This document shows, one piece after another, positions 6,224-60,986 of a DNA stretch of 64,000 nt (positions within the stretch are counted from its first letter, which is position 1; every line of letters starts with the position of its first letter). The translations under genes were made by a program, and so were the position numbers. The stretch comes from Paramoeba atlantica (lineage: Eukaryota; Protista; Discosea). Under the pieces are notes generated by a model that was not told the DNA's origin, did no database searches, and saw nothing but the letters and a program-made list of their open reading frames with translations. Location: contig CDRNVI010000140.1 in the NCBI GenBank assembly GCA_977017575.1, positions 372,001-436,000 of the forward strand, in the 5' to 3' direction.

Positions 6224-9203
6224 ATGCGTTTTGTCATCGGTTTGGTATCTTTGTTGGTGGGGTTTGCCCTCGCCCAAAGTACAAATTATGAAGTTATTCA
6301 TAGGAGGTTAAAGATCATTTTGTTTTTTGGGACTTTGTTTTCTTTCTTTTAGTTACTGATTTGTTTTTCTTTCAGGGAATTTATTCCTTCCTATTACCGT
6401 CAAGTCCCCTTCAAGCGCAACGCGGGTTTGAAACTCGTTTTTCTTTTCGAAAAAGATCCCTTTTCCACTTTCTTTTTTGAATTGATTCCTTTCCACTTTT
6501 CGAAAAAGATTCTTTTTCCGCTCTCTTCTTTTCTGATCTTGAATTTTTTTTTAGTCTGGGAAGAGTCCCCTGTGACTTTCCATATCACTTTGAAGCAACG
6601 AAACCTTGATGTTTTGGATGATTTGTTCTGGAGAATCTCCAACCCTAAGGATTCCATGTACGGAAAACACAAGACCGCTAAGGTAAAACCACTCTCTCTT
6701 TTCTCTCGAGGTGTTTGAGGATTTTTTGAAGAATTTTTTTTTCTTGTTTTGTTTTGGGTTCTTTCTTCTAACAAAAGAAAAAATAGGAAATTAGAGATCT
6801 TGTTTCCCCTCCAGAAGGTGATCGTGAATCTGTTCTCAACTGGGTTCAATCTGTTTACAAACAAGTTAGCCAAGGAGAAGATCTCTTCCAACTTGAAGAT
6901 CGTGGAGATTCTTTCAAGATCACAACAAGTGTTCGAGTCACTGAATCTCTTTTCCGAACCAATTTGGCTCCTTTCCAAAGAACTCGGGGGCCAAACCAAA
7001 AGCTCTTTTGGATTAAGTTTACTGACACTTTGTCAATCCCAAAAGAACTTGGTATTTTTACTTGCCTTTTCCCCCCCCCCCTTTCTTTTCTTTTCAGTTC
7101 AGAACTAATTTTTCTTTTTCTTCAAAGTGCCTATTGTGGATATTATCACAGGAATCGTTAAATTCAACCCCATTCCCCAGGTTTTTTTCCATTTTAAACC
7201 AAAAAATTTTACGCTCTTGTTTAATTCCCTGTTTTTTTTTGTTTTTTTTCATCAGGGTGTTCGTGTTACTCCTATTGAGGTTGCTCAAGCAAGCGAAGGA
7301 AGTTGCAATATTCCTTACACCATGAAGAGAATGTACAGTGTTGATTCGATTTTGAATGCCACCCTCCAACAAGGTGCTTCTCAAGCTCCCTATTCTGAAC
7401 AAGGAATCAAGAAAGAAGGGTTTGGAGCTGATGATTTGAAGCAATTCCAAAGTGAAAATAATTTGATCAATGATCCAATCACTAATATTATTGGAAATGA
7501 TGTTGTCAACTATGTTGAGAAGGTTTTTTTTTTGTTATAATTCTCTTTTTTTGATTGAATTTTTTATTGAATTTTGTCCCCTCCCCAAAAAAAGGATACC
7601 GATCTCGAGGCTGCATTGGATGTGCAAATGTTGACCGGTATGGGAAATGGAGCAAACACCAGTTTCTGGGTCATGAACGAGTGGATGTACGAATTTGCTG
7701 CCCAAATTTTGAACACTGATGTTCCTCCTCTTGTCAACTCTATGAGCTACGGGTTTGGCTTATTTTTTCTCTCATTCTCTTTCTTTCTTTCTTTCTCTCT
7801 TTCTCTTTTTTTTTCTTAAAAGTTCATTTGTTTTTAGATGGTATGAAGATCAACAATGCCGAATTGATGGCATGTGCTCCAAAGGTGAAACTGATCAACA
7901 ATATGTTGAAAGAACCGACACTGAATTCCAAAAATTGGGAACCATGGTTTTTTATTCTTTTGCAAATTATTTTTTTTTTCAAATTTCTTTTTTAACTCTT
8001 TATTTTACAATAAAAAGGGAATCACCATGTTGGCTGCTTCTGGTGATGATGGTACCGAGGTTTTGCAAAAATTCTTCTCTATTTTTTTGTGGTTGATCTT
8101 TTTATTGATTCGACAAAATGTTTTTTTTTAGCCTGACAGCAAATGTGATGAAATGAGACCTGACTACCCCGCAAGTTCTGTCTATGTTCTTTCCGTCGGA
8201 GCCACTGCTGTTGTTTCCAACGGAACAACGTTTGTCTTTTTTTTTTCTTGCTTTCTTTTTATCATTTTTATGATAACAAACAATCTAGTTTCCCAATTGG
8301 ATCCGATGCTCCTCCTACATGTAACTTGAGAAACTGTGAATGCTCAACCAGTGAATATGAAGAAGCTGGTTTGTCTTTTGAACAACGAAGTAGTATTCTA
8401 AAAATCTGACCTGTTTTCTTTATTTTAGCAATGAAATCAAACAATGCCTTTTTTGATACTGGTGGCGGTTTCTCTAGCTATCTCCCTCAACCCAGCTACC
8501 AAAAGGATGCAGTTTCTGCTTATTTGAACAGTGTATGATTTTTGTTTTGTTTTGTATTTTATTTATTTATTTGTACATTCGTTTCATTTGACCATATTTC
8601 GCAAACAGGGAGTGTCCCTTCCCAACCAGGAATACTGGAACCCCGCTAACCGTGGATATCCTGATGTCGCTGCTGTTGGTGCTGAATGTTTGATTGTCCA
8701 GAACGGAGGTTCCGTCATACTTTTTCTTTTTTCTTTTAACAAACATGTTTGATCTCACCACTTTTTTTTTATTTAGATTACGTTAAAGTCGGAGGAACCT
8801 CTGCTTCCACTCCTATTTGGGGAGGTTTGATCTCATTGTTGAATGCTGATCGTTTGAATGCTGGAAAATCCCCTCTTGGATTTATCAACCCTCTGTTGTA
8901 CCAACTTTATTCTGATGTTCTTTTTTTCCTCTTTTTTTTTTTTTCAAAATGGGAGCTGATTTTTCTTCCCGTAGAACCCCGGAGCATTCCGTGATATCAC
9001 TGTTGGAAAGAACGGTGGTGGATGCAATAATCTTGCTTTCCAAGCCACTACAGGATGGGTTTGTTTCTCTTCCTTGTTTCTTTTTTTAACACAACAATTT
9101 TGCCAAAATTTGTTGGAACTCACAATTGTAATAGGATCCTTTGTCCGGAATGGGATCTCCCAACTTTGATCAAATTCGTTCTTATGTTGCCAATTTGCCT
9201 TAA
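6224..9203 (+). CDS. Tripeptidyl-peptidase I / sedolisin (S53) family secreted serine peptidase, paralogue A; multi-exon
   Basis: Signal peptide MRFVIGLVSLLVGFALA; pro-domain LKQRNLDVLDD..ISNPKDSMYGKH; catalytic EAALDVQ, SGDDG and VGGTSASTP; NRGYPDVAA; Ca-site FRDITVGKNG..GWDPLSGMGSPNF; TAA at 9201-9203. Confidence 0.92.
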
Positions 9204-9392
9204 GGTGTTTGTCATCGTCTTTCGTTGCAATAAAGATCATTAGCACGCATCTCTTGCCATCTTTTCTTTTTTCTTACTTTTCTTTCTTTTTTTGAATAAT
9301 TTATTTGTGTTGTTTGATAGTAACATCATCATTCAAACAAAACTCAAAACTTGGCAAGGCACTTGGTTCCTCGATGAGGTTGATGACTCGAG

Positions 9393-9580
9393 TTATTTAA
9401 AAAGATTTCCAAAGAAACTCAAAGGAGACGGTTCGAAGGTTCTGTGATAAGATTCCTTCCCATCTGAGAATTTGTGATGATTTGATTCTCGCGCCGATAC
9501 CGATAATATCGCAGTCGATCAGGCTCACAACGAGAGTGAAGAGTACAATAAAGGGGAGGAAAACAAAGCAGTTTCGTCGA
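9393..9580 (-). pseudogene. Collapsed relic of a sixth GT90-array gene (N-terminal stub fused to C-terminal stub)
   Basis: The minus strand reads acgaaactgctt..ttgtactcttcactctcg..cctgatcgactgcgatat (TKLL..LYSSLS..PDRLRY, as in the array N-termini). It continues directly into ttctcagatgggaaggaa..gaaccgtctcct..tttctttggaaatctttttaaataa (FSDGKE..EPSP..FF..*, as in the C-termini). About 1.2 kb is missing, frames are broken and there is no ATG. Confidence 0.75.
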
Positions 9581-9594
9581 TCTGTCTTGTGGAA

Positions 9595-11004
9595 CTACTT
9601 CTGATTCTGAGATGGTTCAAGCTTCTGACACAATTCTCGACCATCTGATGTTTTGAGATGACTTGATTCTGGAAAACGATCTGGATTCTCGATTTTCACC
9701 CATTTTTGTTTTAAACACAGTTCTTTGAGAATTTGTTTCATTTCTTTAGTTTGACTGTGATCTGGGTTGTTGAGGAGAGTTGAAAAAGCAGACACACTTT
9801 GCTGAACTCTCGTTAAAGCAGTCACAACATATTCGACTTGACAGTGCGCACACAAGAAGTGATTCGCAACCCCTCGAGCATTTGTCACTAAATGTTTACG
9901 CTCTTCAGAGTTATTCAACACATGAAGAACAACAGATTTCGCTGTTTCTCTGTTGATTATTCTGTGTGTATGTTTATCCTTTAAAGCAGGAAAATACCAT
10001 TGTTCTGCTCCTTCTTTTCCCATCATAGGTCCAGTCCAAATAAATACAACACCACCCATCAACCACAGATGGTTCAGGTTTCGAGAATAACTCCCTTGAG
10101 ATCCTCCAGGAAGATCAAGAAACATCGAAAATCTTGGGAAATACTCATGTCTGATTTCCCTCCCGATTAGACGAGGACATTGGCGCATCGCTTTGATTTC
10201 ATCGAGAGTGTAGTTGTAAATCTGAGAACAATATGTAGAGTCCCACTTCATGATACATTCTGTAGCCTTGATATCAAACAATTTTGGGTTGGCGATTGAT
10301 AGTACCGAAGCTGATAACCTTGCGAAGTTTCCTGAGGCAACATCACAGGAGGTGGATGTGCCATGTGCGGTTAACTGTCCACGCCAAAAAACTCGATGGT
10401 TTCTCGTTTCCCACTTTCTTTTGTCTGCAATCTTTAACAAACTCGACATCTCTTCTTTCCAAACAGATAAGTCGTTGAAATAAGGGTTTGGAAACAAAAT
10501 TCCACATTCTTTGGGGTGCTTTTTGGCAATCACGAAAGTTGGAACGATCATATCACAATCCGAAGGAAGATCTCCTGTGGATCTTGTTGAAAGTGAATAT
10601 GCTATTTTCATCGTTTTCAATTTTTGGAGATCTTTGGCAACTTGATTGTCCAAACGCCAATCTTTCTTCGTTAAAACTGACCACATGAATCGTAAATGCA
10701 GACGATTCTTTATCGCTTCAAGGAATTGTTTTTGGACGTATAATTTCCCATCAACGATCCAAACTGTCTGTGAAGACGGTTGGAGGTGTTCTCTCAAGAA
10801 ATCAAAAGCTGAATGGTTTCTTTTGTTGTTCAGTTTGGTGTGGAAGTCGATTGATTGGTCGAGAGCTTGATACATTCTCGATTTCGCGGAATCCCAATCA
10901 TATTGTAAACGAGCAGGACCACTAATTAGCCACGAGAATGAAGAGGAGAAAAAGAGGAGAAAAAAGAGGAGTTTCGTCCCACCCCAACAACATCTGATTC
11001 GCAT
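9595..11004 (-). CDS. Glycosyltransferase family 90 (CAP10/POGLUT-like) protein, array copy 1; intronless
   Basis: MRIRCCWGGTKLLFFLLFF signal/anchor; PNPYF..WETRNHRVFWRG; R..LS..NPKLFD; FLDLPGG..GSYSRNLNHL..GGVVFIW; EQWYFPALK..H, matching the GT90 FWRG / G..yS.RL / EWfy..LKP..HY pattern. Confidence 0.72.
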   Translation of the reverse strand: MRIRCCWGGTKLLFFLLFFSSSFSWLISGPARLQYDWDSAKSRMYQALDQSIDFHTKLNNKRNHSAFDFLREHLQPSSQTVWIVDGKLYVQKQFLEAIKNRLHLRFMWSVLTKKDWRLDNQVAKDLQKLKTMKIAYSLSTRSTGDLPSDCDMIVPTFVIAKKHPKECGILFPNPYFNDLSVWKEEMSSLLKIADKRKWETRNHRVFWRGQLTAHGTSTSCDVASGNFARLSASVLSIANPKLFDIKATECIMKWDSTYCSQIYNYTLDEIKAMRQCPRLIGREIRHEYFPRFSMFLDLPGGSQGSYSRNLNHLWLMGGVVFIWTGPMMGKEGAEQWYFPALKDKHTHRIINRETAKSVVLHVLNNSEERKHLVTNARGVANHFLCAHCQVEYVVTALTRVQQSVSAFSTLLNNPDHSQTKEMKQILKELCLKQKWVKIENPDRFPESSHLKTSDGRELCQKLEPSQNQK

Positions 11005-11196
11005 GAAAACTGCCAACCCCACCAACCAACCAACCAAAAACAACAAACAACAAAAACAACAACAAGAACGAGAGGCCAAAACAGTAAAAGGCTCTGAAGA
11101 AGAACGAGAAAAAGGGTCTTTTAATTTTTTCGTCAGTTCGAAAAACATCAACAACAATTTTTTTCCTCTCTGTCTTTATTTGAAACTCGAATTGTT

Positions 11197-12606
11197 CTAA
11201 GATGGCTCAAGTTTCTTACACAATTTCTTTCCATCTGAATATATGATATGCTTTGTCCCCTTCTCATCCATACCCTCAATTTTCACCCATTCCTGCTTGA
11301 AACACAGTTCTTTGAGAATTTGTTTCATTTCTTCAGTTTGACTGTGATCTGGGTTGTTGAGGAGAGCCGAGAAAGCAGACATACTTTGCCGCACTCTTGT
11401 TAAAGCAGTCACAACATATTCAACAAGACAACGAGCACACAAGAAGTGATCTGCAACCCATCGAGCATTTGCCACTAAATGTTTACGTTCTTCAGAGTTA
11501 TTCAACACATGAAGAACAACAGATTTCGCTGTTTCTCTGTTGATCACTCTGTGTGTGTGCTTGTTTTTTAAAGCAGGAAAATACCATTGCTCTGCTCCTT
11601 CTTCACTTATCATAGGTCCAGTCCAAATAAATACAACACCACCCATCAACCATAAATGGTTCAGGTTTCGAGAGTAACTTCCTCGAGTTGATCCAGGAAG
11701 ATCAAGAAACATCGAATAATTCGAAAAAGAATTGTGTTTAACAGAGTTCCCTTTCAGAGGAGAACAATGGCGCATCACTTTGATTTCATCACGAGTGTAG
11801 TTGAAAATATGAGAACAAAACGTGGAGTTCCACTCCATGGCACAAGTCGTGGCCTTGATGTCAAACAATTTTGGGTTTTTGGTTGACAACGTTAAAGCTG
11901 ATAACCTTGCGAAGTTTCCTGAGGCAACATCACAGGATTGGTTCATGTTCCTTGCAGTTAACTTCCCACGCCAAAAAAGTTTATGGTTTCTCGTTTCCCA
12001 CTTTCTTTTGTCTGCAATCTTTAACAAATTCGACATCTCTTTTTTCCAAACAGATAAGTCGTTGAAATAAGGGTTGGGGAACAAAATTCCACATTGTTTG
12101 TGGCGCTTTTTGGCAATCACGAAAGTTGGAACGATCGAACCACAACCCGGCGAAGGAAGCTCTCCTGTAGACCCAATCAAAAATGAATATGCTATTTTCT
12201 TCGTTTTCAATTTTTGGAGATCTTTGGCAACTTGACTGTCCAAACGCCAATCTTTCTTTGTTAAAACTGACCACATGAATCGTAAATGCAGACGATTCTT
12301 CATCTCTTCAAGGAATTGTTTTTGGACGTATAATTTCCCATCAACGATCCAAACTCCCAGTGAAGGCGATTGGAGATGTTCTCTCAAGAAATCAAAAGCT
12401 GAGTGATTTCTCTTGTTGTTCAGTTTGGTGTGGAAGTCGACTGATTGATCGAGAACTTTATACACCCTCGCTTTCGTCGCTTTCGTGGCATCCCAATCAT
12501 ATTGCAATCGATCAGGGTCATCAACTGGCAACGGGAGCGAAGAGTACAAAAAGAGGATGAGAAAAAAGAGGAGTTTTGGTCCGCCCCAAAAACATCTCGC
12601 TTTCAT
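11197..12606 (-). CDS. GT90/CAP10-like glycosyltransferase, array copy 2; intronless
   Basis: 469-aa ORF with the same motifs as copy 1; the most divergent N-terminus (MKARCFWGGPKLL). Confidence 0.72.
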   Translation of the reverse strand: MKARCFWGGPKLLFFLILFLYSSLPLPVDDPDRLQYDWDATKATKARVYKVLDQSVDFHTKLNNKRNHSAFDFLREHLQSPSLGVWIVDGKLYVQKQFLEEMKNRLHLRFMWSVLTKKDWRLDSQVAKDLQKLKTKKIAYSFLIGSTGELPSPGCGSIVPTFVIAKKRHKQCGILFPNPYFNDLSVWKKEMSNLLKIADKRKWETRNHKLFWRGKLTARNMNQSCDVASGNFARLSALTLSTKNPKLFDIKATTCAMEWNSTFCSHIFNYTRDEIKVMRHCSPLKGNSVKHNSFSNYSMFLDLPGSTRGSYSRNLNHLWLMGGVVFIWTGPMISEEGAEQWYFPALKNKHTHRVINRETAKSVVLHVLNNSEERKHLVANARWVADHFLCARCLVEYVVTALTRVRQSMSAFSALLNNPDHSQTEEMKQILKELCFKQEWVKIEGMDEKGTKHIIYSDGKKLCKKLEPS

Positions 12607-12929
12607 GAAAACCTAACCAACCAACCAACCAACCAACCAGCCAACCAACCAGCCAACAACACGTTCCAGCCGCACAAATAAAAAGAAAAGAAAAAAAATG
12701 GCTTTTTCAAAAGGAGCTTTTTCCCAAAGGAGGTTGTTCGGAAGGTCGGAAAAACACAAGACCTTTTGCATTCAAAAATGAAAGTCAAGTTTTTTAATTT
12801 GGTCTGCAAAAAAATAATTGATCTGTGTTGTGTTTTGTCCCTCCATTAAGTGAAGGAGAAATTGTTCCTGAAAGAACTTTGAATGTAATTGAGGTTTTCT
12901 TCAATTTCCCTCGTGTGCAATATGTTTAA

Positions 12930-14363
12930 CTATTCAAAAAAATATTCAAAGAAATTGAAATTATCCTGATTCGGAGATGGTTTGAGCTTCTGACACAATT
13001 CTTTCCCATTTGAGAATATGATATGTTTTGGTGGGTCCTCCTCGTCCAGACCCTCAATTTTCACCCATTTTTGTTGTAAACACAGTTCTTTGAGAATTTG
13101 TTTCATTTCTTTAGTTTGACTGTGATCTGGGTTGTTGAGGAGGGTTGAAAAAGCAGACATACTTTGCTGAACTCTTGTTAAAGCAGTCACAACATATTCG
13201 ACTTGACAATGCGCGCACAAGAAGTGATTCGCAACCCCTCGAGCATTTGCCACTAAATGTTTACGCTCTTCAGAGTTATTCAACACATGAAAAACAACAG
13301 ATTTCGCTGTTTCTCTGTTGATTATTCTGTGTGTATGTTTATCCTTTAAAGCAGGAAAATACCATTGTTCTGCTCCTTCTTTTTCCATCATAGGTCCAGT
13401 CCAAATAAATACAACACCACCCATCAACCATAAATGGTTCAGGTTTCGAGAGTAACTTCCTCGAGATCCTCCAGGAAGATCAAGAAACATCGAAAATCTC
13501 GAAAATTTTTCGTGTACATATTCCTTCCCAATTAGACGAGAACAATGACGCATTGCTTCGATTTCATCACGAGTGTAGTTGTAAATATGAGAACAATATG
13601 TGGAGTTCCACTCCATGGTACATTCTATGGCCTTGATATCAAAAAAGTTTGGGTTGGTGCTTGATAGCGTTAAAGCTGATAACCTTGCAAACTTTCCTGA
13701 GGCACCATCACAGGAGGTGGGTGTACCTTGCGCAGTTAACTGTCCACGCCAAAAAAGTTTGTGGGTTCTCAATTCCCAATGTCTCTGGTCTGCAATCTTT
13801 AACAATTCCGACATCTCTTCTTTCCACACAGATAAGTCGTTGAAATAAGGGTTTGGGAACAAAATTCCACATTCTTTGGGGTGCTTTTTGGCAATCACGA
13901 AAGTTGTGATCATATCACAATCCAAAGAAAGATCTCCTGTAGAACCCATCGAAAATGAATATGCTATTTTCTTCGTTTTCAATTTTTGGAGATCTTTGGT
14001 TCTTTGACTGTCCAAACGCCAATCTTCCTTCGTTAAAACCGACCACATGAATCGCAAATGCAGACGATTCTTCACCTCTTCAAGGAATCTTTTGTGGACG
14101 TATAATTTCCCATCAACGATCCAAACTGCTTGCAAGTTTTTCAGGTGTTTTCTCAAGAAATCAAAAGCTGAATGGTTTCTTTTGTTGTTCAGTTTGGTGT
14201 GGAAGTCGATTGATTGGTCGAGAACTTGGTACACTTTCGATTTCGCGGAATCCCAATCATATCGTAATCGACCGGGGCCACCAATTAGCCACGAGAATGA
14301 AGAGTACAAAAAGAGAAGAAAAAAGAGGAGTTTCGTCCCACCCCAACAACATCTGACTCGCAT
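12930..14363 (-). CDS. GT90/CAP10-like glycosyltransferase, array copy 3; intronless
   Basis: ATG of MRVRCCWGG at 14363; same motifs as copy 1. Confidence 0.72.
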   Translation of the reverse strand: MRVRCCWGGTKLLFFLLFLYSSFSWLIGGPGRLRYDWDSAKSKVYQVLDQSIDFHTKLNNKRNHSAFDFLRKHLKNLQAVWIVDGKLYVHKRFLEEVKNRLHLRFMWSVLTKEDWRLDSQRTKDLQKLKTKKIAYSFSMGSTGDLSLDCDMITTFVIAKKHPKECGILFPNPYFNDLSVWKEEMSELLKIADQRHWELRTHKLFWRGQLTAQGTPTSCDGASGKFARLSALTLSSTNPNFFDIKAIECTMEWNSTYCSHIYNYTRDEIEAMRHCSRLIGKEYVHEKFSRFSMFLDLPGGSRGSYSRNLNHLWLMGGVVFIWTGPMMEKEGAEQWYFPALKDKHTHRIINRETAKSVVFHVLNNSEERKHLVANARGVANHFLCAHCQVEYVVTALTRVQQSMSAFSTLLNNPDHSQTKEMKQILKELCLQQKWVKIEGLDEEDPPKHIIFSNGKELCQKLKPSPNQDNFNFFEYFFE

Positions 14364-14600
14364 GAAAACTGCCAACCCCAACCAAAAAACGAACAACAAA
14401 AACAAAAACAAAAAAAAACTCCAAAAAGGGCCAACCTTTCCCAAAATTAGATAAAAGAGGTTTGTTTCCTTCTTCTGCCCCATTTTTTGATTTGCTCAAA
14501 AAATTGTGCCAAAAAATTGATCTGTGTTGTGTTTTATGAAAGAGAGAGTCGAAAAAGGTTTTGAATGTAATTGAGGTTCGCTTCAAACAAACCCTTTTCT

Positions 14601-16070
14601 TTAGGTCACAGTGCTCAATATGTTTAACTCTTTTTTTAAAAAATTTTCAAAGAAATTCGATTTGTCCTGTGTCTGATTCTGAAATGGTTTAAGCTTCTGA
14701 CACAATTCTTTCCCATTTGAGAATATGAGATGTTTTGAATCCTCCTTGTCCAGACCTTCGATTTTCACCCACTTTTGGTTTAAACACAGTTCTTTGAGAA
14801 TTTGTTTCATTTTTTCGGTTTGACTGTGATCTGGGTTGTTGAGGAGAGTTGAAAAAGCAGACATACTTTGCTGAACTCTTGTTAAAGCAGTCACAACATA
14901 TTCAACAAGACAACGAGCACACAAGAAGTGATCTGCAACCCATCGAGCATTTGCCACTAAATGTTTACGTTCTTCAGAGTTATTCAACACATGAAAAACA
15001 ACAGATTTCGCTGTTTCTCTGTTGATCACTCTGTGTGTATGTTTATCCTTTAAAGCAGGAAAATACCATTGTTCTGCTCCTTCTTTTTCCATCATAGGTC
15101 CAGTCCAAATAAATACAACACCACCCATCAACCACAGATGGTTCAGGTTTCGAGAGTAACTCCCTCGAGATCCTCCAGGAAGATCAAGAAACAATGCAAA
15201 TCTCGGAAATTTGTGGTGTCTGAATTCCTTCCCAATTAGACGATGGCAATGCTGCATCGCTTTGATTTCATCGAGAGTGTAGTTGTAAATATGAGAACAA
15301 AACGTGGAGTTCCACTCCATGGTACATTCTGTGGCCTTGATATCAAACATTTTTGAGTTGGTGCTTGATAGCGTTAAAGCTGATAACCTTGCAAACTTTC
15401 CTGAGGCACCATCACAGGAGGTGGGCGTACCTTGCGCAGTTAACTGTCCACGCCAAAAAAGTTTATGGTTTCTCGTTTCCCACTTTCTTTTGTCTGCAAT
15501 CTTTAACAAATTCGACATCTCTTCTTTCCAAACAGATAAGTCGTTGAAATAAGGGTTGGGGAACAAAATTCCACATTCTTTGGGGTGCTTTTTGGCAATC
15601 ACGAAAGTTGGAACGATCATATCACAATCCGAAGGAAGCTCTCCTGTAGACCCCATCGAAAAGGAGTACGCTATTTTCTTCGTTTTCAATTTTTGGAGAT
15701 CTTTGGCAACTCGATTGTCCAAACGCCAATCTTCCTTCGTTAAAACTGACCACATGAATCGCAAATGCAGACGATTCTTCACCTCTTCAAGGAATCTTTT
15801 GTGGACGTATAATTTCCCATCAACGATCCAAATTGCTTCCAAGTTTTTCAGGTGTTTTCTCAAGAAATCAAAAGCTGAATGGTTTCTTTTGTTGTTCAGT
15901 TTGGTGTGGAAGTTGGCTGATTGGTCGAGAACTTGGTACATTCTCGATTTCGCGGAATCCCAATCATATCGTAATCGATCAGGGCCACCAATTAGCCACG
16001 AGAATGAAGAGTACAAAAGGATGAGAAAAAAGAGGAGTTTCGTCCCACCCCAACAACATCTGACTCGCAT
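14601..16070 (-). CDS. GT90/CAP10-like glycosyltransferase, array copy 4; intronless
   Basis: ATG of MRVRCCWGG at 16070; same motifs as copy 1. Confidence 0.72.
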   Translation of the reverse strand: MRVRCCWGGTKLLFFLILLYSSFSWLIGGPDRLRYDWDSAKSRMYQVLDQSANFHTKLNNKRNHSAFDFLRKHLKNLEAIWIVDGKLYVHKRFLEEVKNRLHLRFMWSVLTKEDWRLDNRVAKDLQKLKTKKIAYSFSMGSTGELPSDCDMIVPTFVIAKKHPKECGILFPNPYFNDLSVWKEEMSNLLKIADKRKWETRNHKLFWRGQLTAQGTPTSCDGASGKFARLSALTLSSTNSKMFDIKATECTMEWNSTFCSHIYNYTLDEIKAMQHCHRLIGKEFRHHKFPRFALFLDLPGGSRGSYSRNLNHLWLMGGVVFIWTGPMMEKEGAEQWYFPALKDKHTHRVINRETAKSVVFHVLNNSEERKHLVANARWVADHFLCARCLVEYVVTALTRVQQSMSAFSTLLNNPDHSQTEKMKQILKELCLNQKWVKIEGLDKEDSKHLIFSNGKELCQKLKPFQNQTQDKSNFFENFLKKELNILSTVT

Positions 16071-16276
16071 GAAAACTGCCAACCCCAACCAACCAACCAA
16101 CCAAAAAACGAAAACAAAAAAAACTCAAAAAGGGCCAACCTTTCCCAAAATTAGATAAAAGAGGTTTGTTTCCTTCTTCAAAAAAATTGTTTTGTGAAAG
16201 AGAGATTGATCCGAAAAAGGTTTTGAATGTAATTGAGGTTCGCTTCAAACAAACCCTTTTCTTTAGGTCACAGTGT

Positions 16277-17740
16277 TCAATATGTTTCACTCTTTTTAAA
16301 AAAAAATTCAAAGAAATTCGATTTGTCCTGTGTCTCATTCTGAAATGGTTTAAGCTTCTGACACAATTTCTTTCCATCTGAAAATATGATATGCTTTGTC
16401 CCCTCCTCATCCAGACCCTCAATTTTTACCCATTTTTGTTGTAAACACAGTTCTTTGAGAATTTGTTTCATTTCTTTAGTTTGACTGTGATCTGGGTTGT
16501 TGAGGAGGGTTGAAAAAGCAGACATACTTTGCTGAACTCTTGTTAAAGCAGTCACAGCATATTCAACAAGACAATCAGCACACAAGAGGTGATTCGCAAC
16601 CCCTCGAGCATTTGCCACTAAATGTTTACGTTCTTTTGAGTTATTCAACACATGAAGAACAACAGATTTCGCTGTTTCTCTGTTGATCACTCTGTGTGTC
16701 TGTTTATCCTTTAAAGCAGGAAAATACCATTGTTCTGCTCCTTCTTTTCCCATCATAGGTCCAGTCCAAATAAATACAACACCACCCATCAACCACAGAT
16801 GGTTCAGGTTTCGAGAGTAACTTCCTCGAGATCCTCCAGGAAGATCAAGAAACATCGAATAATTCGAAAAAGAATTGTGTTTAACAGAGTTCCCTTTCAG
16901 AGGAGAACAATGGCGCATCGCTTTGATTTCATCACGAGTGTAGTTGTAAATCTGAGAACAATATGTAGAGTCCCACTTCATGGTACATTCTGTGGCCTTG
17001 ATGTCAAACAATTTTGGGTTGGTGCTTGACAACGTTAAAGCTGATAACCTTGCAAACTTTCCTGAGGCACCATCACAGGAGGTGGGCGTACCCTGCAGGG
17101 TGGATGTGCCATGGGCAGTTAACTGTCCACGCCAAAAAAGTTTATGGATTCTCGATTCCCAATCTCTCTCGTCTGCAATCTTTAACAAACTCGACATCTC
17201 TTCTTTCCAAACAGATAAGTCGTTGAAATAAGGGTTGGGGAACAAAATTCCACATTCTTTGGGGTGCTTTTTGGCAATCACGAAAGTTGGAACGATCATA
17301 TCACAATCCGAAGGAAGATCTCCTGTGGATCCTGTCGAAAATGAATATGCTATTTTCATCGTTTTCAATTTTTGGAGATCTTTGGCAACTTGATTGTCCA
17401 AACGCCAATCTTTCTTCGTTAAAACTGACCACATGAATCGTAAATGCAGACGATTCTTTAGCGCTTCGAGGAATCGTTTTGGGACGTATAATTTCCCATC
17501 AACGATCCAAACTGTCTGTGAAGACGGTTGGAGGTGTTCTCTCAAGAAATCAAAAGCTGAATGGTTTCTTTTGTTGTTCAGTTTGGTGTGGTAGTCGATT
17601 GATTGGTTGAGAGCTTGATACATTCTCGATTTCGCGGATTTCCAATCATAGTGTAATCGATCAAGGTCATCAATTAGCCACGAGAATGAAGAGGAGAAAA
17701 AGAGGAGAAAAAAGAGGAGTTTCGTCCCACCCAACAACAT
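16277..17740 (-). CDS. GT90/CAP10-like glycosyltransferase, array copy 5; homologous ATG (17751) is out of frame, alternative ATG at 17740
   Basis: One G is missing in tgg(g)gtggg, so the downstream ATG (MLLGGTKLLFFLL) is the in-frame one. It carries a 7-aa insertion (AHGTSTLQGTPTSCD). Confidence 0.65.
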   Translation of the reverse strand: MLLGGTKLLFFLLFFSSSFSWLIDDLDRLHYDWKSAKSRMYQALNQSIDYHTKLNNKRNHSAFDFLREHLQPSSQTVWIVDGKLYVPKRFLEALKNRLHLRFMWSVLTKKDWRLDNQVAKDLQKLKTMKIAYSFSTGSTGDLPSDCDMIVPTFVIAKKHPKECGILFPNPYFNDLSVWKEEMSSLLKIADERDWESRIHKLFWRGQLTAHGTSTLQGTPTSCDGASGKFARLSALTLSSTNPKLFDIKATECTMKWDSTYCSQIYNYTRDEIKAMRHCSPLKGNSVKHNSFSNYSMFLDLPGGSRGSYSRNLNHLWLMGGVVFIWTGPMMGKEGAEQWYFPALKDKQTHRVINRETAKSVVLHVLNNSKERKHLVANARGVANHLLCADCLVEYAVTALTRVQQSMSAFSTLLNNPDHSQTKEMKQILKELCLQQKWVKIEGLDEEGTKHIIFSDGKKLCQKLKPFQNETQDKSNFFEFFFKKSETY

Positions 17741-18114
17741 CTGATTCGCATGAAAACTGCCAACCCCACCTAACAACAAACAACAAACAACAAACAACAA
17801 AAACAACAACAACAAAAACGAGGAGCCAAAACAGCCAACCGACCAACCTTTCTCGACCACAAAAAGAACAAAAAGAACGGCTAAAAAATAGAAACCTATT
17901 TTTAACGATGATTTTTAATTATAGGTTCCTAATTGTATTGAAAATTAAATTGGACCCGTTGAAATAGAAAAGAATCGAAAAAAAGAACAATTTAATAGTA
18001 TTCTCCTCGATTTTCTCTTTTTGGAAAAATGAGGAGTTTTCCAAACTTTTTTCTTTTTTCGTCCTCTCTTTTTTGTCCTTTTCTTTGTTTCTTGTCAAAG
18101 AAAGAGAGTGAGAG

Positions 18115-21100
18115 ATGCGTTTGGTGTTTTTGGTTTGTTTGTTGGTGGGGTTTACCCTCGCTAATGATTATCAAGTTATTCATCATAGGTTTTTCTTTTT
18201 TGTTTTCTTTTTTTGGAATAATTTTGAACATTTGATTTTTCAGAGGCCGAATCCCTTCTTACTATGAAGAAGTCCCTGTGACTCGTAATTCTGGTTTCTT
18301 TTTTCTTTTCTTTTTTCTTTTCTTTCTTTTTTTTTTAAACAATTTTGCTTTTAGAATGGGAAACCACCCCTGTGACTTTCCATATCACTTTGAAGCAACG
18401 AAACCTTGATGTTTTGGATGATTTGTTCTGGAGAATCTCCAACCCTAAGGATTCCATGTACGGAAAACACAAGACCGCTAAGGTAAAACCACTCTCTCTT
18501 TTCTCTCGAGGTGTTTGAGGACTTTTGTTTTGAAGAATTTTTTTTTCTTGTTTTGTTTTGGGTTCTTTCTTCTAACAAAAAGAAAAAATAGGAAATTAGA
18601 GATCTTGTTTCCCCTCCAGAAAGTGACCGCGAGGCTGTTCTCACCTGGGTTCAATCTGTTTACAAACAAGTTAGCCAAGGAGAAGATATCTTCCAACTTG
18701 AAGATCGTGGAGATTCTCTCAAGATCACAACAAGTGTTCGAGTCACTGAATCTCTTTTCCGAACAACTTTGTCCTCTTTCCGAAGAACCAAGGGCCCCAA
18801 CCAGAAGCATTTGTGGATTAAGTTTATTGACACTTTGTCAATCCCAACAGAACTTGGTATTTTTTTCTTTTCAGATTTTACTCTTAATTTTTCTTTTCTA
18901 ATTTTTTATTAATTTATTCTTTTTTTTTTTTCAAAGTGTCTATTGTGGATATTATCACAGGAATTGTTAAATTCAACCCCATTCCTCAGGTTTTTTCTCT
19001 TTTTCAGATTTTTCTTGCCTTTTCTTGCATATCACTCAAATCTTTTGTGTTCATCTTTAGGGTGTTCGTGTTTCAGAAGCTGATGAGGGAAGTTGCAATG
19101 TCCCATACACTATGAAGTTGATGTACAGTGTTGATTTGACTTTGAATGCCACCAACCAACAAGGTGCTTCTCAAGCTCCCTATTCTGAACAAGGAATCAA
19201 GAAAGAAGGGTTTGGAGCTGATGATGTTCTTCAATTCCAAAGTGAAAATAATTTGATCAATGATCCAATCACTAATATCATTGGAAATGATGTTGTCAAC
19301 TATATTGAGTCGGTTCATTTTTGTTTTTGACTTTTATTTTCTTTTTGTTTTTTGACTTTTTCGAAAGCCTAACATTTTTTTTTTTGTAAAATTAAAAAAA
19401 GGACACTGACACAGAGGCTGCATTGGATACACAAATGTTGACTGGATTCGGAAATGGAGCAAACACCAGTTTCTGGGTCATGAACGAGTGGATGTACGAA
19501 TTTGCTGCCGAAATTTTGAACACTGAAGACCCTCCTCTTGTCAACTCTATGAGCTACGGGTTTGGCTTATTTTTTTTTTCTCATTCTCTTTCTTTCTCTC
19601 TTTCTCTTTTTTTCTTAAAAGTTCATTTGTTTTTAGATGGTATGAAGATCAACAATGCAGTGTTGATGGAATGTGCTCCAAGGGTGAAACTGATGAAGAT
19701 TACGTTGATAGAACTAACACTGAATTCCAAAAGTTGGGAACCATGGTTTGTTCTTTGCCTTTTTTTTTCGGTTTCTTTTTCTTTTCTTTTTTAATGGGAA
19801 AAAAAATTAATAGGGAATTACAATGATTGCTTCTTCTGGTGATGATGGTACTGAGGTGACTTTTTCTTTGAATTTTTCTTTCTTTTCTTTCATTTTGGTT
19901 GAACAATTTTCGTTTTTTGTTTTTAGCCTGACAGAGGTTGTGATGAGATGAGACCTGACTTCCCAGCAAGTTCTGTCTATGTTCTTTCAGTCGGAGCCAC
20001 TGCTGTTGTCAACAACGGAACCACGTTTGTTTTTTCCTTTTTTTTGAAATGATTTTTTATGTGAAATTTGTTGACAAAAATTAAATAGTTACCCACTTGG
20101 ATCAAATGCTCCTCCCTCATGCTCTGACAGAAGTTGTGATTGCTCAACAAGCCGATACGAAGAAACTGGTTTGTTCTTTGATTAACAAAAACAATTGTTT
20201 GACCGATTTATCGTTTTTGAGTTCTTGAATTACTCACTTTGTTGTTTTCAGCAATGAAAACAAACAATGCTCATTTTGATACTGGTGGTGGTTTCTCTCA
20301 ATATCTCCCTCAACCAAGCTACCAAACAGATGTTGTTGAAGCTTATTTGAACAGTGTATGATTTTTTTCTGATTCTTTTTTTTTTTTTTTTACTTTTTGA
20401 TAATCATCAGATTTATTGAGAGTTGAATTGGTATTGTTTTTGTAATTTATTTTTTCGCCAACAGGGAGTTGCCCTTCCCAGCACACAATATTGGAATCCC
20501 AAGAACCGTGGATACCCTGATGTCACCGCTGTCGGTGCTGAAGTTTTGATTATTAAGAATGGAAGTTTTGTCATTTTTCTTTTTCTTTTTAGTATATTCT
20601 CTTTTAAAATGCTCTGAAATGACCACTAAAGATTTCACTTCCTTTTTTTTTTGTCATAATTAGGTCCCATTAAAGTTGGAGGAACCTCTGCTTCATGTCC
20701 TATTTGGGGAGGTTTGATCTCATTGTTGAATGCTGATCGTTTGAACGCTGGAAAATCCCCTCTTGGATTTGTCAACCCAATGTTTTACCAACTTTATGCT
20801 GAGGTTTGTTTCTCTCTTTTATATTACCATTCTTTCAAAATACAACCTTTTTTATTCTGTTTGACTCATCTCATTTTTAATTTTTATTTCACAAAAATAT
20901 AGCAACCACAAGCCTTCCGTGATATCACCGTCGGAACCAATGGTGGTGGATGCGATAATCTTGCTTTCCAAGCAACTACTGGCTGGGTTTGTTTCTCTTT
21001 CAATCCACAAAAGACAAAATTATTATTTGAATTTTGTAAAACAAAAACTATAAAAATGACACTTTTAAATCACAGGATCCTTTGTCTGGATTGGGATCTC

Positions 21101-21144
21101 CTAACTTTGATAAAATTCGTGCGTATGTTGCCACCTTGCCTTGA
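18115..21144 (+). CDS. Tripeptidyl-peptidase I / sedolisin (S53) family peptidase, paralogue B; multi-exon
   Basis: MRLVFLVCLLVGFTLA signal; LKQRNLD, EAALDTQ, ASGDDG, NRGYPDV, VGGTSASCP and GWDPLSGLGSPNF; near-identical exon structure to paralogue A. Confidence 0.92.
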
Positions 21145-21332
21145 GAGGAGAGAGTGTTGGCTTCTTTTACCCGATTTCAAAATTCATAAAAAGGCTTATG
21201 TTTTGAAAGATCTAAACAGACATTTTTTCTTTTCTTTCTCTTTCAATTTTTTTTGGAGGTGATATGATCATCCACACACACACACTTTGTTTGTTCAGAA
21301 AAAAAAAGAAATTATTTCATTTTGATGAATGA

Positions 21333-28465: not shown

Positions 28466-29489
28466 ATGGCGATGAAGCCAATCACAAGTGGCTCTTGGGA
28501 AACGACAAGACCAACCTTCATGCTCTATTCTGTTCTGATTTTTGTTTTTTTGTTGATTACCATTCTTCTGTTCGACTTTTTGGTCATGTTATCCTTCCTT
28601 CCTGTTTGGGGTTTGGTCATGGCTCTGGCATTCGAGGCTGATCGAAGGAGATCCATGAAGATTCAAAAGAGAATCAACAAGAATGAAGGAGGAGATGAAA
28701 GTATTGTTGCTGTGGCAAAATATGGTGAGGTTGAAGAGCTGTTATCGTTTCTATGGCAAAATATGAATGGGATATCTCACAGCTTTTTTCCTGCAATCCC
28801 AATACTTGTCTTCTGGATGATTATCTTTTCCACATTGGTTGTAACTCAAACAATGAGTTTCTCGTACACTCCCTTCATCTTCCTTTTCATTCTTCTTTTT
28901 TTTATCTCCCGGGAGTCTCATCTTGTCATCGCTTTTCTCCAATTCAATGAGAAGGGTTCAAGACCAGAAGAGAAGGTTGTTCATGCAGCAAACTACGACT
29001 TTCTGATGATCTTGATCATTGGAATTGGGCCTGTAGTTCTTTTGGTCTCAGTTGTGTTCTTTTTATGGAGAGGGGGAAATGATGCTCTCACTTTCACTTA
29101 CATCTTGGTTGGGAGTTTATTTCTTGTTGCCCTTTTTTTTTGGGTTTATTTACCTCAAACATTCGAATTGGAAGAGAAGAACTTTGCAATTTGCTCTGGT
29201 TGGCCAATGAGATACAAATTTGAATTTGATTCTGTTTTGGATGTTCGTCCTGTTGATAAATACGAATGCGAGTGTTATCTCAAACTTGCGACTGCATTCA
29301 ATGATATCATTTTGATCAAAACGAAATATTGCAATATCCTAATTTCTCCTCAAAACTCACATCAGTTTATCGAAGACATGAAGGTTTTTCCCTTTTCTTC
29401 CCTTTGTGAATTTAGAAAGATTGACAAGTTCTTTTTTTCAGAAAAAGATGCAAGTGAAGTTTTTTTACAAAAAGAAAGAGAGCATTTGA
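28466..29489 (+). CDS. Multi-TM membrane protein with bacterial-PH-like domain, paralogue 3 (extra N-terminal TMs)
   Basis: Four additional hydrophobic segments, then HAANYDFLMILIIGIGP..LPQTFELEEKNFAICSGWP..FDSVLDVRP..KLATAFNDIILIK..ILISPQNSHQFIEDM; the last exon is uncertain. Confidence 0.6.
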
Positions 29490-29603
29490 GAGTAAAGTTT
29501 TTTTTCGGTGGGTTCGCAAAAGTGATTCTTCGTTCCAAAAGATAAAGAAAAAGATATTTGATTTCGTTTTTATTATTTTTTTATGTGTGATATGGGGGAA
29601 GAA

Positions 29604-31599
29604 TTAATCAAAACGAGCTTGCCAGACCACAATATGATAAGGCTGATCAACTCCTTGGGTTGCGAGAATAGAGCCATAAACACCAATCTTAACCTCAGCA
29701 GATTCGTCAACATGCGCAACAATTCGGTGGATGTTTGTGTTCGTTTCGGTTTCGGAAAGATCGAATGTTGAGAGGGTGGGGTGGTCACCTTGGGATTGGA
29801 AGAGCCAGACGTTTCCAATTGAAATATCCTCTCTGTAAAAGAAAAGTTTTTTTGAGTTTGACGATTTTTAATTGTCTTGTACACATTGAAAGGGTGGGGA
29901 GAAAAAGAGGAAAGATAATAAAAAAAAAGGGTGAAAAAAGAAAAAGTAAAAAAGAATCACTTACTTGAGGGCGATGGTAATACGAGTTCCAGGGACTGCC
30001 TGAAAACGATAGTAATTCCATTGACCATTTTGAACCACACCAGAGTGTTCTACCCCATTCTCCATGACCACACTCTTTAAACTACAGTCTTCACTAGTCC
30101 AGTCATCTTTACAAAGGCAGTGTCCAGCAATACAGGTTCCATGATTCTCATCAGTACAGTCATTCGGACATCTGAGGGTAATGCTCCCGCTCAGTTCGTA
30201 CGAACAATCTTTGTATCCAAAAATACCAACGTGCCTGACATAATCATTTTGAGAAAAAAGAGAAAAAAGCTTTCAAAAGAAGAAATAAAGGGGAAGAAAG
30301 AGAAAAAGAAAAAGAAAAAGAAAAAGGAAATAAAAGAGAAAAGGAAGATTTTAAAATTATAAAAAACAGAAACACAAACCATTGAGCCAACCCAGGATTT
30401 TGGATGGTAAGACTAATATTATCACGAAAACTAATATCTCGATAATCGAATCTCGATTTAGTAGGTTCCTCATCGCCTTGTCGAACATACAAATCACAAT
30501 CGGCTTGATCGTTCAACTGACGAAGACTGAGTTCGATATTATTGGTTGTATAAGTTCCAAACGCAAAAAAGTTCCAAATATTGCCACCCACATATCCAGA
30601 GTATTTTGTTCCATCAAGGGCGATTTCAGCCACTCGTCGTTCGCAAATCTCGCCACTGTAACCAGGTTGACAGACACAATCAAAAGTATCACTACAAGCA
30701 CCATGCGCCTCTCCAGAACATTGATTGGGACACTCAGAATGTGCTTCAAAAGAAATTGAATAATCAGCTGAGTCAGTAAACCCAAACACACCAATATAAT
30801 AAGTTCCAACAATTGCTCCAGAAAGTCTCAAAGTGGAGTGAGAAGATGTGGTGGTATCTCTGGCATCGAAATTTGTCATAGAAGGAATAGACCCAAACTT
30901 GACGTAAAGATCAGCATCTTGGTCTTCCCCCTCTGTGTCCAGCGTGATATTGACTGTGTTTTCGGAGTTTTCAAAAGAATAGTACTTCCATTTTCTCTTA
31001 CCAACATGACCATTCACTGGATTATTTGGTGTGAGAGAAATAACAGCTTGACTACAATCTTCTCCGACAAATCCTGTTCGACAAGTACACACTCCATCGA
31101 AACTACAGCTCCCATGTCCAGAACAATCATTGGGACAAGCGGTTTTCAAAGTGGCCATCACTGTGAAATCAGAACCCAAAAACCCATAGACTCCCACATA
31201 ATAAACTCCTTCAGGTGATTGAATCTCAAATTTCATTCTCTTACTTGTTGAAATATCTCTCATATCGTATTCTTGTCGACTGGGGTACTTGTCCAAACGA
31301 ACATAGGCATCGATATCTCCTCCAGATCCAGTTTGGTTCACTTCAAATTCAATACTCGATTGTTGAGATCGACCAAAGAAATGAAAGAATTTCCATTGAC
31401 GAGTTTCAACTCGAGAGTCGACAGGAACATGGTTGGCCAACCCAATATCTGAAATCGAACAATCATCTCCAGACCATCCCGCCATACACTGACAAACGTC
31501 AGCAGGAGAACAGTCTCCGTTTGGTGGGGAACAATTGTTTGGGCAGTAAGCATTGATTGAAGCAATTGCCACAATCAAAAAAAGAATTAAACTCTTCAT
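29604..31599 (-). CDS. Secreted protein with four alternating EGF(tenascin-type)/PPC-like modules
   Basis: Signal MKSLILFLIVAIASINA; CPNxCS..G.C....C.C..GW.G.DCS x4, each followed by WK(Y/F)(Y/F).F..D.D.YV....P....D..D..YY(V/I)GV(Y/F)G (pre-peptidase C-terminal-like). No catalytic domain or TM anchor was seen. Confidence 0.72.
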
Positions 31600-32044
31600 C
31601 TTTTCTCTCTCTCTCTCTCTTTGTTGGAGCACCAAAAAGAAAAAAAAAAAAAGAGGGGAGAGAAGACAAAGAAAAGAGACAGAAAAAGCGTTCGACACGC
31701 AACTAAATTAGATCCCCAAATTTAGAGTTGTGTTTCTATTTTTTAGACTCTTTTTTTGATTCAACGAAGCATTTGAAAACGTGTCAAAAACAATCTCAAA
31801 TAATTGACTTTCAAATCTAAATGAAGTACTTTTATAATTTTTTAATTTGTATTTTACTGTATCAATAATTACAAAAAGGATCATGTTACTTTACGTTTTT
31901 GATTTGTTGTTTTTCTGTGAACCAATCCCGCTCATGGAAACTTCGGTGAACTTGTTTTGGTTTTCTTTTTTTTTGTTTTTGTTGTTTGTTGTTTGTTTTT
32001 TGCAGAAACAAGTTTGTTGACAGTAATATCTGAAGGGTTGAACA

Positions 32045-59416: not shown

Positions 59417-59729
59417 CTTTTCAAAAAAAAAAAAAGAAAAACAAAGAAAAAACACAGAATTCTCAAGAAAAAAGGTGAAAACAAAAACTGAAAAAAAATA
59501 TTTAGCGATCAAAAAAAGAGTTAGATATCTAAAATATTAGCCATTACCTTTTATTTTGGTTCTCTATTTTTAAAAATTAGCCGTTAGTTTTTCTTTTTCT
59601 GACTTCGTCATTTCTGCACGCAGTTTCTCTTGTTTCACTCGAAACTCACGACCTTTCGTTCTTCTCTCTTTCTTGGAAACAACTTAATTTCTCGTTTGTT
59701 TTTTTGGGTTGATTTTCAAATTTTTGTTC

Positions 59730-60986
59730 ATGTTGAGAAACCTTTTTTGCTCCGCCGTTTCGTTTCGTCGATGGGCGAGTTCTTGTCGTCCAATTCTCCT
59801 CCAAAGTGCCCTGGATCAGGGTGATTCGGTGAAAATCGAATTTGTTGGTGATGATGGTGAACCGCCATCACCGACATCTTCTTTTCCTTATCTCTGGCTT
59901 TTTGATCATCACCCAGCTTCGCTTCACCCAACTTCAAAACAACGAACCTTGATGCCACCCGGTTCGACAAACTCTCCTTTTTCTCTTGAAACACGACCCA
60001 CAAAAGTGTATGTCGAAAAAGATAAGTTGCATCTGGAGTGGGTTGATGTTGCTGGAAACCCCCAGAAAAATGTGTATGATGGAGATTGGCTCTACAAACG
60101 AAGATTCAGTTCGAATACTCGTTCTTCGATTGATGATGTTTTTGAAAGTGAGGAGACTTGGGAAACAAAAGATTTCGAGAATGAGAAGATCCCATCCATA
60201 TCTTCTTCCGAATTTTGTGGATCTGAGATGGGACGAAAGAAAGGACTCTTGCAATTGGCAAAATTTGGTGTCTTTCGAATTCAAGGGTTTCATTTTGATG
60301 AAGAAAACCCAATGCCAGCTGTGGAAGATCTTTGCACACGAGTTGGATTACCAAGAGAAACTTTTTATGGTCGAATGTGGGACACGAAACCCAAAGCAAA
60401 GGAAAAAGTCAATGACACAGCATTCACAAAAATGGAGCTTCCTGTTCATACTGACACCTGTTATTTGGAAAATTCACCTGGTGTTCAAATTTTTGCTTGT
60501 GTGGAACAATCTTTACAAGAGAATCCAGATTTTCCTTACGATGGTAGCACGCGTTTAGTGGATGGATTTCGAATTATCGATTATTTACGTGATCATCATT
60601 TGGAGACTTATCAATTCTTTAAAGAAACACCATTAATTTGGTATGCAAAGGAAGAAGGTGTCTATGCTCGAGCAAAAGGTTCTGTGATTGAAGAAACACC
60701 TTATCGGAGGTTTCGGTACAACCCCTTGGATTTGGATGAACTGACTTATTTGAATTCATCAAAAATATATGATTATTACCACCACAATGCTGTTCTGAAT
60801 CGTGTATTGCATGAAGAGAGATTTATGCTCCGAATAAAACTCCAGGTGGGCGATGCGATTGTTGTGAATAACCACCGTGTGTTGCATGGTCGAGAAGCAT
60901 TTGTTGGATCGAGAAACATGATGGGATGCTATGTTGGTGTGGATGAGTGGAAAAACTCATTAAGGGTCTTGCTAGATGAAGACTGA
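59730..60986 (+). CDS. Trimethyllysine dioxygenase / gamma-butyrobetaine hydroxylase family (Fe/2OG) enzyme; intronless
   Basis: Mitochondrial-type presequence; YLWLFDH..KQR N-domain; LPVHTDTCY..PGVQIFAC (HxD); LVDGF; GDAIVVNNHRVLHGREAF..R.MMGCY. Confidence 0.88.
   Translation: MLRNLFCSAVSFRRWASSCRPILLQSALDQGDSVKIEFVGDDGEPPSPTSSFPYLWLFDHHPASLHPTSKQRTLMPPGSTNSPFSLETRPTKVYVEKDKLHLEWVDVAGNPQKNVYDGDWLYKRRFSSNTRSSIDDVFESEETWETKDFENEKIPSISSSEFCGSEMGRKKGLLQLAKFGVFRIQGFHFDEENPMPAVEDLCTRVGLPRETFYGRMWDTKPKAKEKVNDTAFTKMELPVHTDTCYLENSPGVQIFACVEQSLQENPDFPYDGSTRLVDGFRIIDYLRDHHLETYQFFKETPLIWYAKEEGVYARAKGSVIEETPYRRFRYNPLDLDELTYLNSSKIYDYYHHNAVLNRVLHEERFMLRIKLQVGDAIVVNNHRVLHGREAFVGSRNMMGCYVGVDEWKNSLRVLLDED

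Follow-up and report, generated by a model that had tools for sequence, protein, structure and literature searches.

A Head-to-Tail Array of Divergent GT90-Like Genes in Paramoeba atlantica and Its Candidate Algal Founder

The fungal CAP10 family, which includes Cryptococcus Cap10 and the xylosyltransferase Cxt1, is present in multiple copies per genome and is linked to the building of surface glycans. These fungal paralogues are not known to occur as a head-to-tail array. The sequence analyzed here is a 64,000-nucleotide stretch of the Paramoeba atlantica genome (assembly GCA_977017575.1, contig CDRNVI010000140.1, positions 372,001 to 436,000 of the forward strand), referred to as the window, and positions below are those of the window unless another contig is named. 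It contains five GT90-like glycosyltransferase genes and a collapsed sixth unit, lying between two sedolisin/TPP1-like genes. The locus is likely a lineage-specific, head-to-tail array of a divergent GT90 subfamily that recombines, is under purifying selection, and had a probable algal founder.

Array Layout and the Collapsed Sixth Unit

The minus strand from approximately 9.4 to 17.8 kb of the window carries five long open reading frames (ORFs) and nothing else sizeable in the ORF listing. Copy spans are counted from the conserved start methionine (MR[IV]RCCWGG, or MLLGG in copy c5), and all are on the minus strand. Copy c1 (9598-11004) is an intact GT90-like ORF of 469 amino acids. Copy c2 (11200-12606) is also 469 amino acids in length; it is the most divergent of the five and is the copy that was modeled. 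Copy c3 (12933-14363) has 477 amino acids and is the nearest overall to copy c4 (14604-16070; 489 amino acids), with 88% amino acid identity. Copy c5 (16280-17740) has 487 amino acids, begins with MLLGG, and combines tracts resembling c1 with tracts resembling c2, as a mosaic.

The spacers between the intact copies are 195, 326, 240, and 209 bp, and a repeat finder recovers five-copy repeat families with a period of 1587-1778 bp. In pairwise comparison, the intact copies are 76.7-88.4% identical in amino acid sequence and 84.6-92.6% identical in nucleotide sequence. They are therefore diverged genes, and an assembly artefact is excluded. The arrangement described in an earlier note on this DNA, five intronless paralogues of about 470 residues placed head to tail with short spacers, is confirmed (469-489 amino acids, 195-326 bp apart).

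The sixth unit (9393-9578, minus strand) is a 186-bp relic that joins the 5’ end of the gene directly to the 3’ end. Positions 9578-9497 correspond to coding nucleotides 27-117, and positions 9489-9393 to coding nucleotides ~1330-1440; both pieces are colinear with the gene, in the correct order and strand. The unit has lost approximately 1.2 kb of internal sequence, together with its start codon and upstream spacer. The relic begins 20 nucleotides past the c1 stop codon. Its pieces match the gene with E-values of 2e-9 to 1e-6, while none of 200 shuffles of the stretch reached an E-value of 1e-3 or lower, so the collapsed unit that the note had placed here is real.

The spacer between c2 and c1 (11005-11199, minus strand, 195 bp) has GGCAGTTTTC directly 5’ of the ATG, preceded by a (GGTT)n/(GTT)n run. 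The minus-strand spacers at 12607-12932, 14364-14603, and 16071-16279 have the same ending, a (GGTT)n/(GTT)n run and GGCAGTTTTC. Upstream of the ATG of each unit, the (GGTT)n or (GTT)n run varies in length and terminates in GGGGTTGGCAGTTTTC. The runs lie 5’ of the ATGs on the minus strand at 11005-11060, 12607-12690, 14364-14420, 16071-16120, and 17741-17830. This feature may act as a promoter or leader element common to the units, or it may be a hot spot for slippage and exchange.

Fold and Active Site of the Encoded Proteins

The array proteins are GT90 proteins at the level of fold and superfamily, and outliers by Pfam threshold and catalytic base. Copy c2 was modeled with AlphaFold2 on the family alignment, with a predicted local distance difference test score (pLDDT) of 88.1 and a predicted template modeling score (pTM) of 0.87. 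In a Foldseek search of the PDB with this model, the top four matches were 5L0R, 5L0T, 5F84, and 9W47, with E-values of 1.2e-11 to 1.5e-9; the next match had an E-value of 2.5e-3. These four are all of the solved GT90 structures (human POGLUT1 twice, Drosophila Rumi, and POGLUT2). VIA-align superimposed the model on them with Z scores of 27.2, 27.1, 26.6, and 25.2 and a root-mean-square deviation of 3.4 Å over 316-325 residues, and the next fold, EXT1, had a Z score of 14.2. A profile built from 97 family sequences matched POGLUT1 with an E-value of 2.6e-13 and 53 bits (profile positions 72-380, chain positions 59-341), Rumi with 1.7e-8, and POGLUT2 with 3.8e-8. A narrower profile of 34 sequences reached an E-value of only 0.07 against POGLUT1. 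The Pfam family PF05686 (Glyco_transf_90) matched 14 of 34 relatives, the best with an E-value of 1.3e-8, and 30 of 30 neighbors in the ESM Atlas are PF05686 clusters.

The array proteins carry a hydrophobic signal or anchor at the N terminus, contain eight conserved cysteines, and lack a KDEL-type end. Because of these features, they are predicted to be luminal or secreted, most likely in the lumen of the Golgi or endoplasmic reticulum.

The active site was compared with that of described enzymes. Arg218 of POGLUT1 (Arg316 of POGLUT2), which follows the strand-turn, binds the diphosphate, Arg279 (Arg376 of POGLUT2) is a second diphosphate-binding arginine, Asp133 (Asp238 of POGLUT2) is the catalytic base, and the turn at POGLUT1 272-276 (RGVAA) holds the glucose (PMC5543122, PMC13084666). 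The hidden Markov model (HMM) alignment is in chain numbering, and adding 28 to the chain index gives POGLUT1 numbering. With this offset, Asp133, Arg218, and Phe278-Arg279 all fall on the correct letters. Arg218 aligns with family position R234. All five copies have this arginine, as do 96 of the 97 family sequences. The WRG motif and the start of the SYSRNLN helix are conserved in the family. The RGVAA turn of POGLUT1 is replaced by PGSTxGSY in the array family and is three residues longer.

Several results weigh against assignment of these proteins to GT90 as working enzymes of the POGLUT type. In the Pfam scan, PF05686 matched c2 with only 14.5 bits (E-value of 0.017, residues 184-220 only) against a gathering score of 24, and gave no match in c1, c3, c4, or c5. 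Asp133 aligns with S146, in a column that is A in 46, S in 37, and T in 12 of the 97 sequences, and the N-terminal domain has no conserved acidic residue among these 97. Arg279 aligns with N314. The last two alignments carry their own uncertainty: S146 falls in a loop with insertions and deletions, and the Arg279 register is uncertain by one residue, because a three-residue insertion or deletion lies just before it. The residue next to N314, R313, does not vary among the five copies, and 85 of the 97 sequences have R there. The best-conserved polar residues of the N-terminal domain are K103, H107, K166, and N178.

Judged from the alignment and the model, the fold and the donor-phosphate site appear GT90-like, and the base and sugar pocket appear unlike those of POGLUT1. 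The Asp133 position holds Ser or Ala and the sugar-binding turn is three residues longer, so donor and chemistry may differ from those of POGLUT1. The GT90/CAP10-like identity first read from the sequence is supported by the fold, the family profile, the relatives with PF05686 matches, and the ESM Atlas. It fails the direct Pfam check, in which c2 stays below the cut-off and the other four copies do not match, and Asp133 is not conserved by alignment. Pfam and NCBIfam scans of single array proteins returned nothing usable, and a single-sequence PDB search returned noise only.

Exchange Between Copies, Relatives, and Origin

The array evolves by unequal crossover and gene conversion besides birth and death, and its copies are mosaics. 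The nearest neighbor of a copy switches along the gene. In nucleotide positions of the codon alignment, c5 is 97-98% identical to c1 over 151-450 (rising to 525) and 91-96% identical to c2 over 751-900, with c2 nearest again at the 3’ end. Copies c1 and c3 are 96-99% identical over 976-1275, and c2 and c4 are 96-97% identical over 1051-1275. In maximum chi-square tests of four triplets, the observed value was reached by none of 300 shuffles in each. Copy c5 also contains an 18-nucleotide insertion (17096-17113, minus strand), in which a c1-type variable loop stands directly before the c3/c4-type version; this insertion marks an exchange junction. The birth-and-death process that had been proposed holds in part: the relic shows death and the five diverged copies show births, but the mosaicism makes exchange and conversion at least as important.

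Near-identical counterparts of c2, c4, c1, and c3 (P0001-P0004; 97.2-99.8%) are present on one 108,566-bp contig of a second public assembly. Of the 21 amino acid differences from the array, 16 give the second assembly a residue that another paralogue has at the same column, which suggests that strains or haplotypes may still be undergoing conversion. A counterpart of c5 was not found among the second-assembly proteins, which may reflect a copy-number difference or a collapsed assembly.

Within the array, the pairwise rate of synonymous substitution (dS) is 0.14-0.31, and the ratio of nonsynonymous to synonymous rates (dN/dS) is 0.42-0.58. Sliding dN/dS does not rise above 1 in any 30-codon window and peaks at c2 residues 285-314 and in the signal peptide. 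Across copies, the catalytic half (c2 residues 300-440) is nearly identical, with dN/dS of 0.14-0.4. Amino acid change is concentrated in three places: the loop after WRG (c2 ~218-224), the C-terminal tail, and the residues at ~280-297 that precede the LPG strand. The suggestion that the locus may diversify surface glycans gains no support from the sliding analysis.

The 45.7-Mb genome contains six family members, namely the five array copies and one on contig C148. The latter (C148:247150-248511) is an intron-free paralogue, 57-59% identical in amino acid sequence to the array copies and identical to protein P0005. Against it, the array copies have dS greater than 1.1 and dN/dS of 0.23-0.28. 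Homology between the C148 locus and the window is confined to coding sequence, and no TPP1 gene was found near the C148 paralogue. Proteins P0006 and P0007 are closest to this paralogue (64-67%) and absent from this genome; their source is probably a sister species. A six-frame search, which is weak for intron-split genes, found no canonical PF05686 gene in the genome, and the six divergent copies may be the only GT90-fold genes of the amoeba.

A HMMER search of 1.84 billion representatives returned 820 proteins with an E-value of 1e-3 or lower, 222 of which are at 1e-30 or lower. There were no relatives in the IMG/VR viral contigs or in 185,579 prokaryote genomes, so a viral or bacterial source is disfavored within those collections. 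Relatives are present on 80 marine metagenome loci (L016-L095), on contigs with 60-75% overall guanine-plus-cytosine (GC) content. Among the 22 listed metagenome contigs of at least 5 kb, 21 have a single uninterrupted copy, one (L061) has two on opposite strands, and none has a head-to-tail array. A stable intronless array shared with relatives, which the note would have counted against its reading, was accordingly not encountered in these 22 contigs.

Thirty clusters were looked up for organism names, and seven carry one. All seven belong to Pelagophyceae and come from different clades of the tree; the organisms named are Pelagomonas calceolata, Aureococcus anophagefferens, Chrysophaeum taylorii, and Pelagophyceae sp. 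CCMP2097. The abundance of relatives in ocean contigs of 60-75% GC, together with the named matches, suggests a very large, uncharacterised GT90-like expansion in pelagophytes (820 representative clusters). A literature search found no paper on this GT90-like subfamily in amoebae or pelagophytes.

A tree of 84 rows was rooted at its midpoint. A profile word search for canonical GT90 proteins added none, so no outgroup was available for rooting. The amoeba sequences form one clade, with a Shimodaira–Hasegawa-like approximate likelihood ratio test (SH-aLRT) value of 100, composed of the array (99) and the C148 copy with P0006 and P0007 (96). This clade lies inside a 22-row clade (SH-aLRT 100) that also contains the Pelagomonas group. 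Because all named relatives are pelagophyte and the amoeba clade is nested among them, a horizontal origin is favored. We lean modestly toward an old transfer of an intron-free gene from alga to amoeba, after which the gene would have been copied to a second locus and amplified locally. Counting against this is the basis of the transfer direction, a midpoint-rooted tree with few named relatives among mostly anonymous metagenome proteins.

It is possible, although we consider it unlikely, that the family is instead ancient in eukaryotes and was inherited vertically, with the pelagophyte-only names a product of uneven sampling and loss. Most of the 820 representatives are anonymous, as just noted, and the root is not fixed by an outgroup. 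The GC content at third codon positions (GC3) is 0.38-0.42 in the array and 0.30-0.40 in host genes, near each other and far from the GC of the relatives, and leaves no compositional trace of transfer. However, the seven names are spread across the tree with no other well-sequenced eukaryote group among them, the amoeba sequences are a single clade while the pelagophytes occupy many, and the six-frame search detected no canonical PF05686 gene elsewhere in the genome. Much less probable is that the array founder was a retroposed mRNA of the older C148 paralogue and is intronless for that reason. Homology limited to coding sequence, with both loci intron-free, would fit such an event, but a dS greater than 1.1 between the loci would erase flanking similarity anyway. 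No poly(A) tract or target-site duplication was found at any unit, and both the C148 copy and the metagenome relatives are uninterrupted, so the family was already intron-free. Retroposition is not needed, since the relatives are also encoded as single stretches. Thus, where retroposition or horizontal acquisition had been offered as the source, the first shows no mark and the second is favored by the names and the nesting.

As to what the copies do, a serious contender, though one we hold to be less probable than its opposite, is that they are redundant, with the array serving dosage and kept alike by concerted evolution rather than for glycan diversity. The strong mosaicism, the near-identical catalytic half, and the lack of any window with dN/dS above 1 agree with this. 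The copies nevertheless diverge at 12-23% of their residues, with the changes concentrated in the tail and in two loops next to the donor/acceptor region, and dN/dS within the array is about twice the value against the outparalogue. It is improbable that the proteins keep the GT90 fold and do not carry out POGLUT-type transfer, whether as pseudoenzymes that bind sugars or nucleotides or with a different catalytic base and chemistry. The family-wide Ser, Ala, or Thr at the Asp133 position, the lack of an invariant acidic residue in the N-terminal domain, the sub-threshold Pfam score, and the longer sugar-binding turn point that way. Set against them are purifying selection on all copies and approximately 60 strongly conserved positions among the 97 sequences (including WRG, R234, D249, LPG, GSYSRNLN, and T351-H352), which cluster in the donor-binding half. 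In addition, H107 (75 of 97) could act as the base, and the Asp133 alignment falls in a loop that contains insertions and deletions. Histidine is the base in other GT-B families.

The reading preferred here, and considered likely, a recombining array of divergent GT90 genes with a probable algal founder, would involve the following steps. The product of the genes would be a GT-B glycosyltransferase of the secretory pathway, from a divergent GT90 (POGLUT/CAP10-like) subfamily; by its fold and motifs, it would move a sugar from a nucleotide-sugar donor onto a protein or a glycan. The founder would have come from a family whose named members are all pelagophyte and probably entered the amoeba intron-free by ancient horizontal transfer. 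The array would have grown by unequal crossing-over between units, and gene conversion and unequal exchange would still reshuffle it, while purifying selection preserves the five reading frames and the catalytic core. One older paralogue persists on another contig. On the negative side, no MMETSP transcript matches the array copies closely. A further version, in which an alga-derived, pelagophyte-type GT90 with a replaced Asp base, an enlarged pocket, and hence a new donor or acceptor chemistry varies the surface coat between strains through the recombining array, is doubtful; the apparent four copies of the second assembly, against five here, and its allelic differences drawn from other paralogues would fit it. 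A surface-glycan role is entirely conjectural, which detracts from any reading that includes it.

Neighboring Genes and Comparison With Described Systems

The array lies, as the note had it, between two TPP1 paralogues; these sedolisin/TPP1-like genes are on the plus strand. The left gene (6542-9204) has at least 11 coding segments in ~2.6 kb, and the right gene (18341-21145) is 81-89% identical to it in nucleotide sequence. Matches to sedolisin/TPP1 (MEROPS S53) were made exon by exon. The exon at 6787-7158 matches the Pro-kumamolisin activation domain (Pro-kuma_activ, PF09286) with 25 bits and an E-value of 2.5e-5 (cut-off of 23.5), and the exon at 8740-8991, which contains the catalytic-serine segment GGTSASTP, matches human TPP1 (3EDY) with an E-value of 4.4e-11. 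The flanking genes thus carry both marks of the S53 family, the activation domain and the catalytic-serine segment. A glycosyltransferase remnant was sought beyond either TPP1 copy, and none was found.

The contrast in introns with the neighbors also holds, with at least 11 coding segments in the left TPP1 copy against uninterrupted ORFs of 1.4 kb in the array. The window also contains long uninterrupted ORFs outside the array, at 39852-42248 (minus strand, 798 amino acids), 30244-31698 (minus strand, 484 amino acids), 28466-29545 (plus strand, 359 amino acids), and 59709-60986 (plus strand, 425 amino acids). Intronlessness is therefore not unique to the array, and genes that lack introns and were possibly acquired may be more widespread in this genome.

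If active, the copies would provide the amoeba with a set of six closely related enzymes, which may shape the cell coat. Coat chemistry has practical interest because some Paramoeba-like amoebae are pathogens of fish gills. The pelagophyte link offers a clean candidate case of gene transfer from one marine protist to another, with local amplification afterwards. The family has many members, nearly all of its representative clusters are uncharacterised, and its active-site signature is unlike that of the studied GT90 enzymes.

The closest described structures are POGLUT1, Rumi, and POGLUT2 (5L0R, 5F84, 9W47). The array proteins share with them the GT-B fold over ~320 residues (Z scores of 25-27), the W/F-R-G motif, the diphosphate-binding arginine, a predicted secretory-pathway location, and disulfides. 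They differ in having only 13-16% identity, no KDEL-type end, and no filamin domain. Another difference from POGLUT1 is an insertion of 12 residues between WRG and R234 in the array family, in which a Cys and a Gly-Asn are conserved. The likeness to fungal CAP10 (PF05686/SMART CAP10) lies in the relatives of the array family, which are named “Glycosyl transferase CAP10 domain-containing protein” in UniRef; the array proteins themselves are below the PF05686 threshold, and they are set beside the fungal sequences by description only. Both families have several copies in one genome. The pelagophyte GT90-like proteins are of the same subfamily, with 27-41% identity over most of their length and the motifs IAKK, PNPYF, FWRG, LPG, and GSYSRNLNHLW in common. 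The pelagophyte-type genes of the metagenomes are single and lie in DNA of 60-75% GC, whereas the amoeba genes are arranged as five plus one, in an array of 40% GC. Tandem expansions of glycosyltransferases and concerted evolution are common. The locus had been put forward as an undescribed system; it is rather a local expansion of a known enzyme family, an ordinary though tidy example of a gene family that expands and reshuffles locally, and it leaves current ideas standing.

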